DNA of 64,000 bases from Nageia nagi (GCA_050084985.1 JBITNC010000002.1:31496001-31560000), one strand, 5' to 3'; shown: positions 3,546 to 58,838, numbered from the stretch's first letter. Program-made: numbers and translations. The notes: generated from the sequence alone by a model not told the origin.

Positions 3546-3737
3546 TGTAAATCATGCATTCCATAGATGACTTTCTATTTCATATGTTTTTGTATATGAT
3601 TTATGAATATGAATTATGATCCACTATTATTTTTCTTAAATATATGTCATGAATGTGTTGTTCAATGAGCTTATTTCATGGAAAAATATTTAAAAAATTG
3701 CAGTTTTTTGTTTTTTTTTAATGTGCCACGATTAAAT

Positions 3738-3899
3738 AAAACTAGTGAGAAAAGCCTTGTTGGATATTTAAACATAAAACCCTTGCTGGAATTTGGAAAC
3801 TAAAACCATATTAAGTTTAAAACTAGTGAGAAAATCCTTGTTGGATATTTACACATAAAACCCTTGCTAGAATTTGGAAACTAAAACTATATTAAGTTT
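3738..3899. repeat. Tandem duplication, ~81 bp x2
   Basis: aaaactagtgagaaa..ccttgttggatattta.acataaaacccttgct.gaatttggaaactaaaac.atattaagttt occurs twice head-to-tail. Confidence 0.9.
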
Positions 3900-5616
3900 G
3901 CAGACCAGACGTTGCTTGTGTGAATACCATTTTACCTCCAGACCAAACAATAGTTCTTTGGTATTTTATTGTGGTGGCTGTATTATTCTGTAGGTTTTAT
4001 TTAAAATTAGTTGTGTGCATCCATAACATAAATGCAGACTCTAGCTTTATTATTCTACTCTACACACTAGTATGTGAAAATCTGAAACCGGACAGAATAT
4101 GTGTCTGAACGGTCTACAATGCCGAAACCACATTAGTAAAGCAGTGTTCAAAGTAAATATCAGTGTTTACCTCGAAGTGTCTTCTGCTTGAAACACTGCT
4201 GAAACTTTGATGATAAAACTGGAATTCAAGTTTTTTGTAATTGGATGGTTTGGAAATCTGTAAAGTATAAGCTGTATGCTGAAATAGTGAAAACTAAAAA
4301 ATTATGCTGAATTTAAGTTATCTTAAAGCTTTCTACTGAACTGTAATTCTGAATATTTGTAGAAGATCTGAGAGCCTAAACTTCAATGTTAATTGTCTAG
4401 AACATGGTACCTAAAGCTATTACTTCTGCTAAGGTTTGTGTGATTGGTTTTGCTTTTGTTGAACATGGTTATAAGTTTTGAAGCGAGAGGATCAAAGAAC
4501 CAAGTGGTGTAACAGATTACATAATAGTCTCAATCATGTAAATGTGTTTACCTTGCCTATGTGTTCCACTTAATTTTGTGGTCAGAGCGACTAATCTTAA
4601 TTTGTATCCTACATCATGATGTAATCCCCTTTGAGTCTTCTCCACTGAGAAACTTATGTCAAAAGGAGTTTGAGCAGCATTCACTAAGACCTGGTCTCAT
4701 CTCAAGCTAGCGAACCTGCTATGTACATTCAATGTTTTGCAAGTGCCTGCCAGCACAAGAAGACTATTGCTTTTTCAGAGCCTTCAACATCCTCAAAACA
4801 GCTACAAATGTTTGATAAAGCGGTTGCAATGTCAAACAAAAGCAGTGATTTCCTTTCTCCAATAACATCTATTCTAATTATAACTTTATTAGAACAAACA
4901 TCCATTGGCCTATACGTTTTTGCTTGTTCGCTACAACCTGTCGACAAATATTTCTTATTTCAAATAAGAACAAAAGGTGAAGCTGTCCAACCTAAGTGCC
5001 TGATCATTCCTCCACTTGAATTAAAAAATTCACCAATTTGTGTAATGAACCAACTAGGAAAACACACTTAAAACTGAGTTTATCACATCAAATTAGGGCA
5101 AATTCATACCAAAGTAACTTTTTGTTTGATAATCAGCAAATATAATTCATAATACACTCAGCAAATATGTCCCAAAACTATCCCATTTCATCCAATGATG
5201 TTTATAAAAATTATTTGAGAGTGCAAACACAATTTCTGACTTGGAATATACCATAAACACTCCTCAACCCTGCAAATTAAAGTACCCAAGGCTGGAAGAT
5301 CTGGTCCATGGCTTAGATCTATTGTCAAACAAGTGAATAGGCTCCCTTGAAACGGGATGATCTACCTTCTAGGTGATTGATCAGCAAAATACTATTAAAA
5401 ACCCTTCATGTAGCCCTTTTCCAAGTTGAATATTGATGATCTAGCTGACAAGCGCTCACAATATTTTTCAGAATGCTCTTAAAAGAAGGATGATCCTCCT
5501 AAGCAGTGACAACTCCAAAACAAGCACCAAACCCTCCTCTAGGCTAGACGAACTTGTCTAGGCTTGATTTATTCTCAGATATGGAAGTTTAGCACTCATG
5601 CAATGCAATAGACTCA

Positions 5617-6163
5617 AGGTTGGTCTTCCCCAAATCATCACTCAGAGGCTGGTCTTCCTCCAAGTTCCTACTCTTGAGCTAATCTTCCCAAGAGAAATCA
5701 GAATATTAGTTGCTACAACAATATTCCAAAAGTTTTCAAGATCAAAATCAGAACATAGCTAAAGATCTCAAAAGTAGTCATATTTAGTAAGAAATTTAGG
5801 CAACCTAAGGCTATCACGAAGTCACCAACAAGAAGTTGGCTTGTACAACACAACTTCACCTATTCCAATTCGATGCATGTTTTAGCTCTTATGAAGGCTA
5901 AATCTCTGTATGTATCTACATATAAGATCTCTCCCTCCAAATGCTTTCTACCATGTAAAATAATACTTATAGGTGTTTGTAAATTCTTTGCACTTGCAAT
6001 TACATGTGCATTCGTTATTATTATACCATATGAATCTATAATTTTCCCATACCTATACATGTCATTGAGATCTTGTGTTCTACTTAACACAACAACAACT
6101 TTTGCGATTGATGGGCGCTTTTCACCATATGCGTGACTAATCATTTTTCAAAAATCTAAACCT
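5617..6163 (-). pseudogene. DEG14/HtrA-like protease fragment, tandem unit L1
   Basis: ORF 5860-6144 ...GKIIDSYGIIITNAHVIAS...IILHGRKHLEGEILYVDTYRDLAFIRAK; internal deletion relative to the other units. Confidence 0.8.
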
Positions 6164-6739
6164 AGGGTTGGTCTTCCCCAAATCTTCACCCAGAGTCTGG
6201 TCTTCCTCCAAGTACCCACTCTTGAATTGGTCTTCCCAAGTGGAATCAAAATATTAGTTGTTAGAGCAAAACTCCAAAAGTTTTCAAGATCAAAACATAG
6301 ATGACGATCCAAAAAATAACCCTAATTTCAACCAAAGGCTGTCACGAAATCACCTGCACGAAGTTGGCTTGAATAAGCCAACTTTGACTATTCCAATTCA
6401 ATGTGTGTTTTAGCTCTTACAAAGGCTTAACTTCTATATGTATCTACATATAAAATCACTCCCTCCAAATGTTTTCCATCATGTAAAATGATACTTATAG
6501 ATGTTTGTGAATTCTTTACACTTGCAATTACATGTGCATTCATCATTATTGTACCATATGAATCTATAATTGTCCCATACCCATACAAGTCATTGAGATC
6601 TTGTGTTTTGCTTAACACAATAGCTTTTGCAGCTTTTGCGATTGTTTCTGCCATAGAATTCTTTGTCAAACAATGTTCATGGATGTTTGAGCGCCTTCCA
6701 CCATATGCATAACTAATCATTTTTCCAAAATATGGAATT
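6164..6739 (-). pseudogene. DEG14/HtrA-like protease fragment, tandem unit L2
   Basis: ORF 6427-6765 HCLTKNSMAETIAKAAKAIV...GYGTIIDSYGTIMMNAHV...LHDGKHLEG; premature stop. Confidence 0.8.
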
Positions 6740-7287
6740 AGGGTTGGCCTTCCCCAAATCTTCATTTAAAGGTTGGTCTTCTTTCAAGTGCCCACTCTTC
6801 AGCTAGTCTTCCCAACAGGAATCAAAATATTAGTTGCTAGCAAAATAATAAAAATTTTCAATATCAAAATTAGAACATAGCTACGATCCCAAAAGTAGTT
6901 GTATTTGGTAAGAAATTTGGGCAACCTAAGGCTATCATGATATGAAGTTGGTTTGAACAACCCAACTTGGCTCATTCCAATTCAATGCATGTTTTAGCTC
7001 TTTTATAAAGGAAAAATCTTTGTATGTATCTACATATAAGATCTCTCATTTCAAATGTTTTTCATCATGTAAAATGATATTTATAGGTGTTTGTGAATTC
7101 TTTGCACTTGCAATTACATGTGCATTCGTCATTATTGTACCATATGAATCTATAATTGTCCTAAACCCATATATGTCATTGAGATCTTGTGTTCTACTTA
7201 ATACAACAACTTTTGCAACATTTGTAATTGATTCTGTAATAGAACTTTTTGTCAAACAAGGCTCATGAGCGTTTGAGCATCTTTCAT
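6740..7287 (-). pseudogene. DEG14/HtrA-like protease fragment, tandem unit L3
   Basis: ORF 7046-7255 ...TIIDSYGTIMTNAHVIASAKNSQTP...; GGA>TGA-type stop. Confidence 0.8.
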
Positions 7288-7288
7288 C

Positions 7289-7877
7289 GAATTTTGGAAA
7301 AATAATTAGTCATGCATATGGTGAAAGGCGCTCAAACGCTCATGAACATTGTTTGACAAATAATTCTATTACAAAACCAATTGCAAAAGTTACAATAGTA
7401 GTTGTGTTAAGCAAAACACAAGATCTCAATAACATGTATGGGTCTAGAACAATTATAGATTCACATGATACAATAATGACAAATGCACTTGTAATTGCAA
7501 CTAAAAAGAATTCACAAACACCTATAAGTATCATTATACATGATGGAAAACATTTTGAGGGAGAGATGTCATATGTAGATACATGTAGAGATTTAACCTT
7601 CATAAGAGCTAAAACACGCATTGAATTGAAAGGGCGGGGTTGGGCTATTCAAGGCAACTTCGTGCAGGTGATTTCATGACAACCTTAAGCTGCCCAAATT
7701 TCTTACCAAATATGACTACTTTTAGAATCGTTAGCTATGTTCTGATTTTGATCTTGAAAACTTTTAGAGTATTATTGTGGCAGTTAATATTTTGATTCCT
7801 CTTGTGAAGACCAACTCAAGAGTGGGCACTTGGATGAAGACCAACCTTTGAGTAAAGATGTGGCGAAGGTCAACCTT
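7289..7877 (+). pseudogene. DEG14/HtrA-like protease fragment, tandem unit R1
   Basis: ORF 7353-7679, then after a frameshift LGYSRQLRAGDFMTTLSCPNFLPNMTTFRIVS, matching the HtrA LGxSxxLRxGDxVxAxGxPxxLxNTVTxGIVS block. Confidence 0.82.
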
Positions 7878-8283
7878 GAGTCTGGATTTTGGAAAAATGA
7901 TTAGTCATGCATATGGTGAAAAGTGCTCAAGCACCCATGAACATTGTTTGACAAAGAATTCTATTGCAGAATCAATCGCAAAAGTTGCAAAAGTTGTGTT
8001 AAGAAGAACACTAGATCTCAATGACATGTATGGGTCTGGGACGATAATAGATTCCTATGGTACAATAATGATGAATGGACATGTAAATATAAGTGCAAAA
8101 AATTCACAAACACCTATAAGTATCATTTTCCATGATTGAAAACATTTAGATGGAGAGATCTTATATGTAGATACATACAGAGATTTAGCCTTCATAAGAG
8201 CTAAAACACGCATTGAATTGGAATGGGCGAAGTTGGGTTGTTCAAACCAACTTCGTGAAAGTGATTTCATGACAGCCTTAGGT
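7878..8283 (+). pseudogene. DEG14/HtrA-like protease fragment, tandem unit R2 (3'-truncated)
   Basis: ORF 7858-8139 with GSGTIIDSYGTIMMNGHV, then RDLAFIRAKTRIELEWAKLGCSNQLRESDFMTALG. Confidence 0.82.
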
Positions 8284-8869
8284 GATATGAAAATAAATCA
8301 AGCCTAGACAAGTTCGTCCAACCTAGACGAGGGTTTTTTGCTTGTTTTGGAGTTGTTTTCACCACCTAAGAGGATCGCCTTGCTTCTGAAGGCAATTTGA
8401 AAAATATTCTGAGCACTTGTCATCTAGATCCATCAATATTCTGCTTGGAAAAGGGCTACATGCAGGGTTCTTAGCAGTATTTTGCAGATCAATCACCTAG
8501 GAGGCAGATCGTCCCATTTCCAGGGAGCCTATTCACTTGTTTGATAGCTGATCTAAGCCCTGGACCAGATCATCCAGCCTTAGGGACTTTAATTTGTAGG
8601 GTTGATAAGTGTTTATGGTATGTTCCAAGTCAAAAATTGTGTTTGCACTCTCAAATAACTTTTATAATCATTGGACGAACTGGGATAGTTTTGCGACATA
8701 TTTTCTGCATGTATATTGAATTGTATTTGTTGATTATCAAACAGAGTTACTTTGGTATGAATTTGCCCTAGTTTGATGTAATAAATTCAGTTATAAGTGT
8801 GTAGAATTTTCTGGATAAAATTGGGTATCTGACATTATTTTCCTAGTTTTCCTAGTTGGTTCATTGCAA

Positions 8870-10030
8870 TCTACGAAGACATATTCCTATACAACACTAA
8901 TAAGTTATGAGGCATAAATCTTGCCTTCTTGTGATGATCCCAAACTGGCAGATCATGCTCAAACATGCGCTGGGAGAGGGACGTTTGCCTTCTTGCTCTA
9001 AATTCACCCAAACAAGCTTAAATCACCACAAAATATCCAACGTCTAGCCAAATTGAGCAAATACAAGTACGAACATGCAAACATATCTCCAATAAATATT
9101 TAACTTTGAAAATAGCACTCCAGATCCAATGTTGCAACCAGGAAGGGAAAATAGTAATTTAACAGTGTAATTATGATTCCAAATCCAACATCTAGCATAA
9201 GAGGATAGTTACAGCAAAAATGAGAGAAATATGTAATTGTATTGATAAGAGAAATGTTGAAGCACAATTACATAAATATATTTCAACCTAAGGAGCTTGT
9301 ACCAAGACTTCCTCCAATAGGGTTATGTTGGATAGCACTAGGGCTTCACCAATCACAACAATGACAAGGGAAAGTCTAGGACTTCCCCACAGATTCCGTG
9401 ATGGAACCGACAGTGTTCCTCTCAAGATGACTGGAGTAAGCTTGACGCTAGCCTTCTATGACCTTAAGATCTCAAATGCAGGTTGCCCTACAAGTGGCAA
9501 AGATAGAGTTCTCACACTTAGTCCTATAAAAAATGGTTTATAATCAATAATCGCATACTTTGGAATGTCTAGGAGTCCTTTTATAGGCGATGTAATCTCT
9601 CTTCTAATCTTGCATTGAGATGATCCAATGGCGAGATGTGATTCGTGTGCTCATGTTATCATTGTCCAAGACGAAGTGCCTTGGCATAAGTGAGATCACA
9701 TCCAACGGTCCAGGAGTGCAATGTCCAAGTGGTGGTGATGTTGATGTGGCTTGGGATCAGCACCGCCAAGTGTCCAACATCCAAAAGAGGTGATGTGGGG
9801 CCTTGGGATGCCCAAAACTCCGTAGGGGTGAATTAAGCCCTAAATGCCCAACATCCAAGTGTGAGAATCTTCCAATGCCTCAAAATGCCAAATAACTCCT
9901 TGAAATGCCACGTCCAAGCTTGGATGCTCTCTAAAGATCTCGTAGTCGGTGAAATCACCTAGGGGGATGATCTACCTCAAAAAGGGGAGCACTAATGATT
10001 AGAGATACATCAAATGCCAATATTACAACT
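8870..10030 (-). mobile_element. LTR-retrotransposon remnant (degenerate PBS-like site ~9115-9129 and LTR-like GC-richer block)
   Basis: gcactccagatccaa|tgttgc resembles the reverse-complement Met-PBS next to a TG; the block ends near tattaca. Confidence 0.35.
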
Positions 10031-45900: not shown

Positions 45901-48415
45901 AGCGAAGGGAATAAAGATGAACTAGGGAAAAAAGCCTCTAGTGAAGACAGTTAACTAAAACAAAACAAAGGGGTAAAAAGATAAGGGGATATATCCATTA
46001 AACACTAAACCCTAACCCAAAAAATTACAAATACGAGAGGGAAGGATCACTCAAAGAAAGAAAGAAAATATTTTTATGTCCATGGATGACCAAAAGCTAT
46101 CAAAGAGACTAGAATGTACAAGAACGGTAAAATAGCAAGCAAGGCCCCAAAAAGGCACACCATAAAGCTAAATAGAAATAAAATAAACCCAACTAAAGTG
46201 ATACAATAAAGGGGTAAAACCTAAAAAAGAAAATATAACACAACATAGTTCGCTAAAGAAAGGGCCGCCACGGACCTCACTAGGGAAAGCACAAGGGCGC
46301 TCTCGTTTGCAAGACCAAGGAGAGAGCTCGTTGATTGTTGTGTGTTGTGTTTGTGGCGATGCTACCCGTGAGTCCTCGAAAGAGAATGGGTGTCTTGCAA
46401 GCGTTGTTTGGTGCAGCATGTAGGCTAAGGAGGCTCGTTACTCCTCTAACAAGCTCCCTCAAATGAGGAGGCTCAAAAGAAGGATGAAATACAAAGGACT
46501 CCTCTTGTATGTTAGATATGAGATACGAGATGCTTCCATAGAAGGTTGCCCTCTCAGAAATAGAGAGCTATGCATTGCCAAATAGAATACTAGAAAAAGG
46601 TAGACAAATTATGTGAATCTCGAAAGAGACAATGAAAGATAAAGTGGTCTTTAGATTCAATCTCAAACAAGTACAAATGGTAGACTCACAAATCACGGGC
46701 TACATGATGATATATGTTGATCCTCAACTAATGTGAGAAAACTTGGAATTGTCCAAGAAACATCCTCAATCCAAGGGTTAGGTGTAAGCTAATGTACCTG
46801 AGGGGGAGGATCAACCCTCTATCAATTTGGATAATGTGATGGGAATAATGAGTCAACTTAGGTAATAAGGCATTGTTGGGGAGTGACCCAAGTAATTTGG
46901 ATGTAGTCCTTACAAATTGCCTCCTATGTCGATGTCAGTGAGTCCACTACAGATCTAAGCAAGCCCCCATGAGGCATAGGAAGCCTATCATGGAAAAGTT
47001 GAAACATCGTAATGTCTCAAATACCTCAAAAAACTAGCACCAATGGCAACTCCGAGTGACAACGTCCATCAATGAACCCAACACCCTAGAAGGAAATCTA
47101 ACTACAACACCTCCAAGATTTTCTAAATTATGCAAATGATGGAGAAAAAGGACCGAAGAAGCAATGGCCCACACCTGAAGAGGGTAACATCTGAATTCTG
47201 CAAGCATGATAAGGTGGAGAATAATCCTGTTACTCCAAATGGAGCGAGAATATTTTGGGGCCATACAAACACAAGCCCCCTATACCACAACTTATGGCGT
47301 GAGCCATCCACATTGGGAGATGCTTGGAAACAAGTGAAGAGAAAGAGAAAAAAGTGATGCCAAAGAGAAGTACAATTGGAAACCAAGCAATATCATATAC
47401 CTAGAGTGAAGCACGGATCTGAGGAACCAACAGATCTAAAGAAAGGACCTATGCAGCATCTCTATATTGATTTCATATCCTTTTCATACGTAATTAGCGG
47501 TCAGCAATGTGTTTACCATATCTAATAACTAATAGACTTTTTATTTATAGCATACATCATATTTATTTGAAAGAAATTTTATGAACGATATATTCTAAAC
47601 ATATGCCTGAGTGGGCATAATGCACTAATCAGTTGGCAGATTGGCTATCTGCTCTCTCTTTCACTGGAAGAAGAGATGAAAACGACTTGTAAAGGGCTTG
47701 AGAAGAAAATTTTCAAACATGGATGCATTCATCCTATGATGATCTCAATACTCAAATTAGTCTTACATGCTTAAATATTTTCTGTTGATTGAGATTAGCA
47801 AATGCTATATGTTATTTGCCCTTGCTTGTGCAAAAAGTGGTGATCTTATGGTGTGCTATTCTCCTCTACATACATTATTTTCACATGCTATTCTCAACTT
47901 TTTGTTCAGGAAAAATATACTATAATAGCAGTAAGTAGCATAGTAAATTTGTTTCAAATGTAGATAAAATCATTAATTTCATGTTATCAAGTAACTCTTA
48001 ACAGAAAAGTACAAGAGAAATATCATTTTTCCTACACTAAGATATTAGTATAGGTTTTTTAGCTTAAGGAAGAGCAGATAACTAGAGGATAACATGCTCA
48101 TCAACAAAATTTAGTGCACATAAATGACAAGCACTTTTTGAAATTTGTAAGTAGCGTAATTATAAAACCATATGGAATAAAAAGAAATTGAAATGGAATG
48201 GTTGGAAGTTTGAAACAGCCTAAATTTAGAAAATACTGCAATGTTTCAGGACTTAAAGTGAATAATCAAAAATCGAAATCAAAAACCATTATTTTTGATA
48301 AACAACCAAAATCCATCTAACCTATCTACATATATCCAAAATGTAAATAACAATAGAAAAGTATTAAAGTATTAACATGAAGGTAGTTAAACAGTTACGG
48401 AAAAAGATAACACAC

Positions 48416-48682
48416 CACACCAGTCACATCCAGGATTGCAGTTGTTGAGTCTATGACCCGTTTTGCAGCTATTGAACAAGCAGGAAATCTTAGGTTTAGA
48501 GTTTTCTCCAACTCTTGCACATGATATTTCAAATACTTTTCCAGTGTTGTGATTTCCATTAGCTTATTTGGATCTACCTTTCCAATTCTTTCAATGTAAA
48601 CTGGCCTCCCATACTTGTCAACTCCATGATATCCATGTGGATAACAGTTCTTTACTTCAGTGCGTTCAGTATAATCAAAATC
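48416..48682 (-). CDS. Sec14/SFH exon 3 (DFDYTE...[21 protein letters not shown]...[24 protein letters not shown])
   Basis: TACAG| and |GTGTGT; 267 nt; canonical plant SFH motifs. Confidence 0.97.
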
Positions 48683-49239
48683 CTGTACCAAAGAAGAAGC
48701 TAATAAAAAAAATTTTGGCACTAAAGCTAAGTGATTTTTAGATAATCAAAAACATCAGAACGCCTTAGCAATTATAAAATTAAATGAAGCACAAATTGTA
48801 ATGATGAGTATCTGAAGCAGACAAATAGCATATTTGAAAGCCTTTTGACAACAGTCAAATTCAAAATAAATGTCATGACATCAGCCTGCATGATAATATT
48901 ATATAACCAGAGTTTTCTTGGACATTGTTTTTCTTGGTTACATCCTTTGTTGCAAACTATTTCTTTAATTTCATTGAACTACTCTAGCTGATAAACTTTT
49001 ACCCCTTGCAGGTCAACTTAAACAAGAGTTAAAAGTATTTCAATCAACTACGTTTTTAGTCTAAGCATCCAAACAAAAGGACACCCATATCAAAGACAAC
49101 AAATGATGTAATAAACTTATAATCCTAGCATTCCCCACCTATTACACCATATCAGACAAGTAAACCTGCTTGGCTGGAAACACACAAAACAAAGACACTA
49201 ATCTGACAACTGGGACACACACTTGAAGTTCATTCTTAA

Positions 49240-57321: not shown

Positions 57322-58315
57322 ATGATCAATGTACGTCATGAAACTTGAAACTCCAACAAATTTGATGATATGCACAATGGACTTTAACCTGACAAACATT
57401 TCACATAATTGCAAAGCCTTGCTATGCACAACAGGCTTCAACCTGACAAACATTTCACAAGATTATAAAGCCTTGCTTATCAAAAGTATAATATGTAATT
57501 ATTCCGACTGGTGAATGAAAATCTATGATTCTTATACATACAACAAAGTTTTTCACAAGCCACACTTTTTATAACTACATTTGCTTTAAATCATAAGGAT
57601 GTTTCTAAGTCACTAATGCCCTGTTGTACCAAACATTTAAAAATTTAGATAGAACAAGTTTCAAGGAAAGTGGACAGATGCTTCTTGAGATGATCCCACA
57701 AACTCTTTGAATAATTTGAGTTTGAAAAGCATTCATCACAATAATATAGCTTTTCCCAAGATGATTTGGAGTTCACAAATATGACACCATGCTTGAAATC
57801 AAAAAACACAACTTAAATGTTTTCCATATAATAAACAGTGCAGTAGTACACTCTTTTTTCCAAAATGACTTGCTGTATAAATGAAGAATCTATGTTTAAG
57901 ATCATTTGAAAATACAAATTCAAATCATCTTAATAATTTAAATCAAATCCAAAACCCCATACATTAAATGAAAATTTTGGCAATAGTAAAAGAAAATAAC
58001 ATTATAGTAGTTGCAAATTGAAACTGTGTTATAATACTTTTGACATACAAAGCTAGCACTTTCTGGATGCTTAAATGTTCCTACAACCCTTTAACAAACA
58101 GGAACACCAACATTTATAACTTTCTCCATGAGAGAGGATCTTCATAGATAGCAGATAACATGGCCAGGGTATGTTAAAATTCATACTCAAACGAAGCCAT
58201 TATAAACAGCAATACTAAATGGCACAAATCCATCTACAAATTTCAAAACAAAACATAAAATAATAAAACTAATATCTAAGTGAATAAAGAAAATAGATCA
58301 ACAGAAAAACCTCAC

Positions 58316-58838
58316 CGTAAGAGTGTATGGTAGTCATCATACTTTTCCGGAAGTAAATTACTATCAACAAGCATCTTCCTAAATGATTGGACGACATCTT
58401 GCTCTTTTGGATCACGTATATCTCTAATAATTAGTTTGCTATCAGTCCTTTTAAGCCGTTTCTTCATTGAATGGCTAATCTTTGAGGAAGCAGTCCTAAA
58501 AGCCTTGATCCCTCTCATAGAAGGATTACTCTGTACACTTGCATCACCTAATTGACTTCCAAGTTCATCAGTGTTGAAGCTTTCCGATTTTCTTTCTATA
58601 TTTACTGTGGTAGACCAATTGGAATGAGCATGTCTTGTATTTTGATGTTGTTCAGGAGACCAGCTCAAAGATCTTTCTCCATTTTGTGCAGTTGATCTGG
58701 CAGAAAACCTTTGTTTTCTTTCTTGATCTTCATGGATTGATATTTTAGAAGATCCTAGTCCTTTTTCTTTCCAAAGGAAGTCTTGAAGTTTCATTCCTTT
58801 CCCTTTATAGATCCCACTACTTGTGTTTTGTTTGTCAC
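58316..58838 (-). CDS. Sec14/SFH first visible coding exon (N-terminal extension ...DIRDPKEQDVVQSFRKMLVDSNLLPEKYDDYHTLLR)
   Basis: CTTTTCAG| acceptor (phase 1, frame open) and CG|GTGAG donor; SFH motifs ASSK..HS.KKR and LLP..DDYH.LLR; upstream start exon not located. Confidence 0.93.

Follow-up and report, generated by a model that had tools for sequence, protein, structure and literature searches.

A 3.8-kb foldback of five DEG14-like protease gene fragments in Nageia nagi, probably a relic of a break- or replication-associated inverted duplication

We identified a genuine single foldback of 3828 nt at positions 5041-8868 of a 64,000-nt stretch of Nageia nagi DNA (the window), which consists of five fragments of a DEG14-like HtrA protease gene enclosed by a pair of outer arms. 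The locus combines parts of equal age, neutral decay, missing transposon hallmarks and a thermodynamic potential to form a hairpin. Taken together, this makes it probable that the locus is neither a gene nor a mobile element but a structural relic, which originated from an inverted duplication associated with a DNA break or with replication and decayed neutrally afterwards.

Repeat finding and self-blastn confirmed the original prediction that nearly all of this region is an inverted repeat. Its limits are 5041 and 8868, with an exact 20-nt match of 5044-5063 to 8846-8865, and self-blastn aligns 6331-8283 with its own reverse complement at 83.3% identity over 1971 nt and the outer arms, i.e. 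5062-5580 and 8285-8802, at 85.9% identity over 523 nt. The proposed layout of outer arms around three minus-strand and two plus-strand units was recovered as well, the outer arms measuring ~540-585 bp. The left outer arm (5041-5583), for which no protein homology was found, pairs with the right outer arm (8284-8868; K2P 0.14), which contains an extra 43-45 nt at 8803-8845. On the minus strand, U1 (5581-6155) has an HtrA/DEG14-like coding remnant at ~5752-6141 followed by a non-coding tail, U2 (6156-6731) a coding remnant at ~6331-6726 and U3 (6732-7290), which adjoins the centre, a coding remnant at ~6879-7258, all three delimited by the unit alignment and by tblastn with DEG14 proteins, for U1 and U2 supplemented by Pfam. 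On the plus strand, U4 (7291-7885; coding remnant ~7329-7741) adjoins the centre and is the most complete unit, and U5 (7886-8284) is truncated to its coding part (~7915-8283) and directly joined to the outer arm. Only four of the five fragments are full units, and the arms are not strict mirror images. The units show pairwise identities of 82-88% with transitions exceeding transversions by ~2.2:1 in the unit alignment. Tandem Repeats Finder reported no repeat, the unit period being above its 500-nt limit.

The centre of the foldback is nearly devoid of a spacer. In the fold of 6700-7900 the loop comprises ~30 nt (7290-7320), which the unit alignment assigns to the first ~30 nt of U4 that are absent from U3, in agreement with the predicted short, unit-derived spacer. 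Identity of the innermost arms, 7000-7286 with 7322-7608, is 85%, as had been estimated by eye, and repeat finding places 35 nt between them. A small palindrome, ATTTT..AAAAT, is present at 7291-7303 and partial pairing reaches into the spacer, which at ~15% divergence is indistinguishable from chance; an inverted microhomology bordering the spacer is no longer legible.

Each unit carries the N-terminal His/Asp part of the HtrA/Deg protease domain, bearing out the claim of five DEG14/HtrA fragments. The ORFs of four units match profile positions 1-59 of 144 of Pfam Trypsin_2 (best E 1.2e-6, for U1), HtrA proteins of the PDB match at E 2e-5, and the top names among the profile matches in a library of 1.8 billion proteins are 'protease Do-like 14' (DEG14). 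The majority sequence of the five units, a reconstruction made without a reference sequence, restores a single open frame of 163 codons, which aligns with residues 160-306 of Amborella 'protease Do-like 14' at 43% identity (E 9e-31, 110 bits); every one of its best matches bears the name Do-like 14, and other HtrA representatives score ~73-80 bits. The homology of this rebuilt ancestor stops at GIVSYV (Amborella residue 306), before the GNSGGP serine motif, with the His and Asp regions of the catalytic triad being present and Ser being absent. As the His-Asp-Ser triad is incomplete, the units contain a fragment rather than a protease. We found no PDZ match and no further DEG-like exon in the window using tblastn at E up to 10, and Pfam revealed nothing in the ORFs of the flanks or outer arms. 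A profile of the five ORFs yielded zero matches among 5.8 billion proteins of 62-196 aa, and hence that set holds no annotated sister fragment. We abandoned the idea of each unit being an exon with AG|GT borders, as in-frame coding homology extends ~50 nt beyond that GT. Elsewhere in the window, a SEC14-like exon is located at 48395-48721, with relatives among short proteins being 60-74% identical.

All parts of the foldback are about equally diverged, with K2P distances of 0.13-0.22 among the units and 0.14 between the outer arms. Any pair of units has only 0-3 derived sites and no indels in common, resulting in a star-like tree of units. All five units are disabled, four by stops and the fifth by a frameshift: U1 has one stop and private 42-nt and 6-nt deletions, U2 two stops and private 14-nt and 2-nt deletions, U3 two stops and a loss of the first 27 nt of the unit, U4 one frameshift and U5 one stop. 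Substitutions at codon positions 1/2/3 number 44/60/49 (P 0.27), there are 113 nonsynonymous and 25 synonymous codon changes, and the CpG observed/expected ratio is 0.30 at the locus and 0.31 for the window. The arm differences had been proposed to include many transitions, some of which would be G:U pairs in RNA; transitions indeed predominate, but G:U wobbles are not in excess over A:C, with 62 G:U vs 71 A:C in a plus-strand transcript and 71 G:U in a minus-strand transcript. Because of the even distribution of changes over codon positions, the stops and frameshifts, the lack of a G:U excess and the background level of CpG depletion, the decay of all copies since amplification looks neutral, and nothing in the arms points to selection for pairing. 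The 163-codon majority frame suggests that the fragment was still open when it was amplified.

The mutation spectrum of the units switches strand at the centre of symmetry. In sense orientation, the singleton changes are 15 G>A vs 1 C>T in U3 and 14 G>A vs 2 C>T in U4, which places polarised C>T changes on the plus strand to the left of the centre (15:1) and on the minus strand to its right (14:2). The bias is confined to the two central units (central vs distal units, Fisher P 2.8e-4). The pattern emerged post hoc, from 32 substitutions in all. An unpolarised check yielded 44 C/T-type vs 20 A/G-type differences (P 0.004). The test for a tC preference of the APOBEC type was negative (P 0.22), and CpG methylation was rejected as cause of the strand bias, only 2 of 29 G>A changes being located at CpG.

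Independent data on the structure came from two low-depth contig sets, X1 and X2, neither being on record as RNA; the type of X1 is unrecorded and was guessed as RNA. Four short X1 contigs and two X2 contigs reproduce pieces of both arms with 0-1 differences. Contig depth at the locus is 2.5-4.5 and similar to that of the left flank, the neighbouring repeat at 8926-9900 reaching 590, and in these two low-depth sets the locus behaves as single-copy. Coverage by X1, though a small data set, amounts to ~25% for the locus and to half for the left flank, which would indicate low-level transcription if X1 is RNA. The centre (7153-7546) is spanned by no X1 or X2 contig, the junction therefore resting on the assembly alone, and in one X1 contig 7052 is connected with 8153 of the opposite strand; both observations would fit an assembly artefact created by a chimeric fold-back read or by collapsed and inverted repeats. 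We regard such an artefact as barely credible, since fold-back read artefacts yield identical arms, whereas the arms observed differ at 12-18% of sites, a divergence that the original prediction had already held against an artefact, and have private indels, and since arm-specific sequence of both arms is exactly reproduced in two other data sets. Folding of the whole 3828 nt bore out that a read-through RNA would form a very long imperfect hairpin, with a minimum free energy of -2046.8 kcal/mol vs ~-836 kcal/mol for shuffled sequences, 1344 base pairs across the centre, 81% of the bases paired and 16 helices that continue for at least 21 bp without interruption. This very strong folding, 19 exact inverted matches of 20-57 nt within the foldback and the contigs of X1, guessed to be RNA, that exactly match both arms and the left flank would suit a working hairpin-RNA locus, in which a Pol II read-through transcript folds and is diced by DCL proteins into small RNAs that silence a DEG14-like paralogue in trans or direct methylation in cis. 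Gene-fragment inverted repeats acting in this way are known in plants, i.e. poplar ARR17, persimmon OGI, the soybean CHS I locus and Arabidopsis PAI1-PAI4, and Allen et al. reportedly proposed in 2004 a model of inverted gene-fragment duplications as hairpin-siRNA or proto-MIRNA loci. Our locus shares with these the inverted fragment of a protein gene, the short loop and, thermodynamically, the long dsRNA precursor. In contrast to them, its arms are old, having drifted to 82-88% identity without an excess of pairing-preserving changes on either strand, the nearest known proteins are only ~40% identical to its fragment, and its arms consist of tandem units, three vs two, making several pairing registers possible. 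The proposed homology of the dsRNA to a DEG/HtrA protease holds at the protein level but amounts to just 38-43% identity of the ancestral fragment to DEG14 of every angiosperm tested, these being 71-79% identical to Kingdonia DEG14 over the same region, so that the tested angiosperm DEG14 genes are not targetable by small RNAs of the locus. A close parent is likewise missing among the 62-196-aa proteins searched, and no Rfam family was found in the 64-kb window. Given the strand bias of DRM2, RdDM fed by a hairpin transcript of one strand should leave its marks on one and the same genomic strand throughout both arms, unlike the C>T strand switch observed at the centre. A working hairpin-RNA locus is thus unlikely, and we infer the locus not to be a functional small-RNA gene; if transcribed through, it would still be a Dicer substrate giving rise to mostly cis-acting small RNAs of the heterochromatic type. 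Reviews on related subjects are PMC10004981, PMC9641971 and PMC9636151.

The suggestion of a gene-capturing palindromic element is not supported, as we found no target-site duplication, no further copies in the 64-kb window and no recognisable terminal motif. A non-autonomous foldback or Pack-MULE-type DNA transposon, whose long terminal inverted repeats absorbed a gene fragment that was then internally duplicated in tandem, would account for the whole structure being bounded by inverted termini and for the host-gene fragment carried, and Pack-MULEs and foldback (FB/SoFT-like) transposons likewise have long inverted termini, internal subrepeats and captured host-gene fragments. Unlike in these, the gene fragment at our locus is part of the inverted repeat and not cargo between the termini. 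Within ±7 nt of the ends and with up to 2 mismatches we found no direct repeat of 8-11 bp, a feature that 48% of randomly chosen pairs of places possess, and shorter candidates occur at chance level only, so that a target-site duplication of 2-11 bp is not above chance. No second copy of the arms or units exists in the 64-kb window, X1 depth of the outer arms corresponds to a single copy, a transposase or related ORF is absent, and we know of no superfamily consensus resembling the termini TGTAATGAACC and their inverted partner. A transposon origin is not supported because of the missing target-site duplication, the lack of a second copy in the window and the single-copy-like depth, and we consider it quite unlikely. 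The ends read TG...CA on inverted, not direct, repeats and the flanking 5-mers are CAATT and ATCTA; an LTR-retrotransposon integration product was therefore rejected, the repeats being inverted and a 5-bp target duplication lacking. The TG...CA ends and the uninterrupted coding piece of ~450 nt could also reflect an intron-free piece of a DEG14-like mRNA that underwent snap-back copying by reverse transcriptase and integrated, and the sense G>A changes of U3 and U4 would be expected from deamination of first-strand cDNA as well. A single exon would look identical, however, each unit has ~150 bp of non-coding tail and no poly(A), the 5-bp target duplication is absent, and the G>A bias is missing from U1, U2 and U5. 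Furthermore, snap-back copying results in mirror-shared mutations, whereas U3 and U4 have just two derived sites in common, making a retro-derived origin decidedly improbable.

For the break- or replication-associated inverted duplication, which we favour as the probable origin, the following order of events is suggested. A piece of ~580 bp of a DEG14-like HtrA protease gene would have been copied while it still was an open frame, comprising ~150 codons with the catalytic His and Asp and ending ~25 residues before the Ser, plus ~150 bp of non-coding tail. This piece was presumably amplified in tandem, and soon after the array together with ~550 bp of adjacent DNA may have been duplicated in inverted orientation, resulting in the near-spacerless palindrome, most likely by a break- or replication-associated fold-back or by head-to-head joining. 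Neutral decay of every copy would have followed, K of ~0.14-0.2 corresponding to several to tens of millions of years. We infer this origin because of the asymmetric spacer of ~30 nt, the strand-switched C>T changes and the fact that break repair is known to generate inverted duplications of the fold-back type that have short spacers (PMC3907307; see also PMC10622511 and PMC7467729). The asymmetric spacer comes together with a lack of target duplication and with arms and units of like K2P. Fold-back inversions from breaks or stalled forks (PMC3907307, PMC10622511, PMC7467729, PMC3834830) resemble our locus in the head-to-head arrangement, the short unique spacer and the absence of a target-site duplication, and they share with it a content that is indifferent to sequence type. 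Fold-back inversions known from yeast and human are of recent date and large, from kb to Mb, and most are terminal or derived from dicentrics, whereas the locus described here is small (3.8 kb), interstitial, fixed and ancient, and it resides in a plant.

The strand switch might offer a further trace of such events. As a tentative and rather doubtful interpretation, the centre could be a fossil record of single-stranded DNA, with C>T changes on the strand running 5'->3' toward the centre on both sides. The changes affect ~14% of one strand's cytosines, a density far exceeding one episode of spontaneous deamination and needing recurrent exposure or an unknown mutagen. To our knowledge, land plants do not have ssDNA-specific deaminases of the APOBEC kind. 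Where both sides of a break undergo 5'->3' resection, a '5' C single-switch' pattern has been described (PMC6786661), and similar to these clusters the locus has top-strand C changes 5' and G changes 3' of one point, here the palindrome centre. Single-switch clusters originate in a single event from a mutagen specific for ssDNA, such as APOBEC or alkylation (PMC6786661), whereas the changes reported here show no motif preference and may have built up over millions of years.

As a summary, nothing shows the locus being in use. On its own it is another decayed gene-fragment duplication in inverted orientation that could feed RNA silencing, and since it shows no sign of being kept for silencing it should not be regarded as regulating DEG proteases. 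Its value lies in being a dated and internally controlled example, in which five copies allow the changes to be polarised and in which, judged from sequence comparison, amplification and inversion appear to have happened together. If the reading of the centre as a record of single-stranded DNA holds true across the palindromes of this plant, long palindromes would be recurrently broken and resected, or would stall replication forks, and their arm differences would constitute a natural assay of structure-induced mutagenesis, possibly by a plant mutagen that acts specifically on cytosines of ssDNA. An origin at the DNA level and a mutational scar shared among palindromes would outweigh any single hairpin candidate.

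The foldback over 5041-8868 is real and reaches the coordinates of the original prediction, as seen by self-blastn and by an exact 20-nt inverted match at its ends (5044-5063 with 8846-8865, with TGT before it on the left and GCA after it on the right). Repeat pairs, self-blastn and unit alignment also bear out the structure described there. A repeat search identified 18 pairs of inverted repeats and 8 families of direct repeats within the locus, and self-blastn aligned 6331-8283 to its own reverse complement with 83.3% identity over 1971 nt and the outer arms (5062-5580 and 8285-8802) with 85.9% identity over 523 nt, the direct-repeat offsets being 548-595 nt. Between the outer arms, the protease-sense unit alignment places U1 (5581-6155), U2 (6156-6731) and U3 (6732-7290) on the minus strand and U4 (7291-7885) and U5 (7886-8284) on the plus strand. 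The first 27 nt of a unit are missing from U3; their counterpart in U4 forms a loop of ~30 nt, and the right outer arm carries a surplus of 43-45 nt at 8803-8845. U5 ends after the coding part and directly adjoins the outer arm, so that the mirror symmetry of the two arms is not exact. No other sequence resembling the locus or its flanks was found in the 64-kb window. A perfect 57-nt inverted match (5878-5934/8152-8208) joins U1 and U5, whereas the arms elsewhere are ~86% identical; chance (which we estimate at roughly 1 in 50-100) or local gene conversion could account for it, or the stretch may be conserved.

ORFs of four units match positions 1-59 of the 144-position Pfam Trypsin_2 profile (best E 1.2e-6), and unit ORFs also match solved HtrA protease structures (E 2e-5). 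A profile built from the five unit ORFs and scored against 1.84 billion representative proteins had just 20 hits with E <= 1e-3; the best real matches were 'protease Do-like 14' of legumes and Kingdonia with 33-34% identity to single units. We rebuilt the ancestral fragment as a majority-rule consensus of the five units, resulting in one open frame of 163 codons which shows 43% identity to residues 160-306 of Amborella Do-like 14 (E 9e-31). The homology, which was also traced by tblastn, stops at GIVSYV, corresponding to GIVSCV in the Amborella protein, so that the His and Asp regions are present and the fragment ends ~25 residues before the catalytic Ser motif; the protease fragment has no PDZ domain, and the remaining ~150 bp of each unit are without protein homology. 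Over the fragment region the Kingdonia protein shares 71-79% identity with DEG14s of angiosperms ranging from Amborella to Asteraceae, and the rebuilt fragment shares 38-43% with each of the 136 angiosperm DEG14 proteins compared. Judged by these alignments, the units hold an HtrA fragment for which DEG14, in Arabidopsis a heat-induced mitochondrial Deg protease (PMC6793672, PMC4130198), is the nearest named family as originally labelled, yet at a large distance.

The units diverge by a K2P of 0.13-0.22 (mean 0.17) and the outer arms by 0.14, with mirror-partner units no closer to each other than other pairs. Since any two units have only 0-3 derived sites in common and every indel is private, tandem amplification and inversion were close in time and followed by independent decay. 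Substitution rates per site per year are 1.3e-8 in grasses, 7e-9 in Arabidopsis and about 2e-9 in conifers, dating the duplication event to roughly 6 to 45 million years ago. Changes since amplification fall on codon positions 1/2/3 in 44/60/49 cases (P 0.27), and of the codon changes 113 are nonsynonymous and 25 synonymous; four units contain stops and the fifth a frameshift. Transitions per site are ~3x more frequent at G/C than at A/T, and the locus has a CpG o/e of 0.30, against 0.31 for the window overall (0.22-0.48 in every 4-kb bin). The cytosine decay of the locus is the heavy decay of its surroundings and nothing beyond. Low CpG and the presence of only four ORFs of at least 130 aa in the 64-kb window fit a large, repeat-rich, heavily methylated plant genome.

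Elsewhere in the window, a high-copy repeat at 8926-9900, its ORF having no Pfam match, begins ~60 bp past the right end of the palindrome. Two low-depth contig sets from sequencing runs of one sample, X1 and X2, give it summed depths of up to 61 and 590, respectively, the palindrome and its left flank having depths of 2-4; a boundary near 8929 shows up as numerous variant contigs and loose ends. An exon with a CRAL/TRIO (SEC14-like) domain (48395-48721, minus strand; Pfam E 1.2e-6), only 60-74% identical to the closest short database proteins, and a same-strand ORF ~10 kb upstream (58312-58794), by eye the N-terminal part of such a protein, suggest one gene with very long introns. Two direct repeats of ~540 bp (11131-11674/14781-15286; 81% identity, 3.6 kb apart) are perhaps the LTRs of a small old retroelement, and 82 bp are tandemly duplicated at 3737-3899 (95%).

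Polarising the singleton changes of each unit against the other four, in sense orientation, revealed a strand switch at the centre. The central units show G>A and C>T changes in ratios of 15:1 (U3) and 14:2 (U4), compared to 4:6 (U1), 4:7 (U2) and 3:1 (U5) in the distal units (heterogeneity P 0.002; central versus distal, Fisher P 2.8e-4). In U3 and U4 together, 29/210 G sites and 3/142 C sites changed (P 1e-4), the changed sites not being common to both, and on the plus strand this reads as C>T left and G>A right of the centre, throughout the 560 bp to either side. The unpolarised comparison of U3(+) with the reverse complement of U4 yields 44 C/T-type and 20 A/G-type transitions (P 0.004). 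No motif preference was found among these changes, and 2/29 G>A changes in the central units are at CpG. The geometry is the same as that of the '5' C single-switch' ascribed to a double-strand break resected 5'->3' on both sides (PMC6786661); by our own reasoning, the lagging-strand template would acquire the same pattern if forks coming from either side stalled at the palindrome. Simple fold-back priming on a damaged template would instead have left mirror-shared changes, and RNA-directed methylation with a strand bias, guided by a hairpin transcript of one strand, would have marked one and the same genomic strand in the two arms; neither matches the pattern. We regard the pattern as a lead: it was found post hoc, comprises 32 changes and is too dense for one episode of spontaneous deamination.

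The original prediction offered the locus as a hairpin-RNA candidate, and in the folds we ran a read-through transcript would indeed form a long hairpin. The central 1.2 kb fold into a single stem (-655.6 kcal/mol) and the whole 3828 nt reach -2046.8 kcal/mol compared to about -836 for shuffles, with 81% of bases paired, 5041 pairing with 8868 and so on inwards, 1344 pairs spanning the centre and the surplus left-arm unit looping out. Together with 16 uninterrupted helices of at least 21 bp and 19 exact inverted matches of 20-57 nt, this predicts any read-through RNA to be an excellent Dicer substrate. Nevertheless, we consider a working hairpin-siRNA gene unlikely. Transition differences between the arms would form 62 G:U wobbles on a plus and 71 on a minus transcript, with bias neither way, and nothing suggests that pairing capacity is maintained; silencing of ordinary DEG14 genes in trans is excluded by the ~40% protein identity of the fragment. 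None of the runs holding the locus is on record as RNA. The type of X1 is not on record, RNA being a guess; measured against the 8926-9900 repeat, the locus is better represented in X1 than in X2, which, should X1 be RNA, would be compatible with low-level transcription. In one X1 contig (depth 3.3), U3 at 7052 switches to the reverse complement of U5 at 8153, the homologous position, across a common exact stretch of only 27 nt, shorter than the assembler's 31-mer; a variant copy, a recombinant allele or template switching on a hairpin may account for this contig. Another differs from 5532-5754 (U1 tail and inner end of the outer arm) by 24 differences and 2 gaps, and two X2 contigs carry C>T at 5643; a diverged second copy of 5532-5754 may exist elsewhere in the genome.

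The other part of the prediction, a gene-capturing palindromic element, is not supported. No direct repeat of 8-11 bp with <=2 mismatches flanks the ends within +/-7 nt (145/300 random place pairs give one), shorter ones are at chance level only, and the flanking 5-mers (CAATT and ATCTA) leave no 5-bp duplication. As there is moreover no transposase-like ORF and the arms are at single-copy contig depth, we interpret the locus as a duplication of fold-back or head-to-head type, which break repair or replication would have produced; a foldback or Pack-type transposon is slightly less likely even than the siRNA gene, and a retro-derived snap-back product is improbable. X1 and X2 contain exact pieces of both arms and the left flank at depths of 2.5-4.5, and we give misassembly hardly any weight. 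Best supported, and in our judgement probable, is that a pseudogene piece, amplified in tandem, was long ago duplicated as a palindrome through DNA-level rearrangement and has since decayed neutrally. Short-spacer fold-back inverted duplications are a known class (PMC3907307; also PMC10622511, PMC7467729 and PMC3834830), to which the Nageia nagi locus would add another case.
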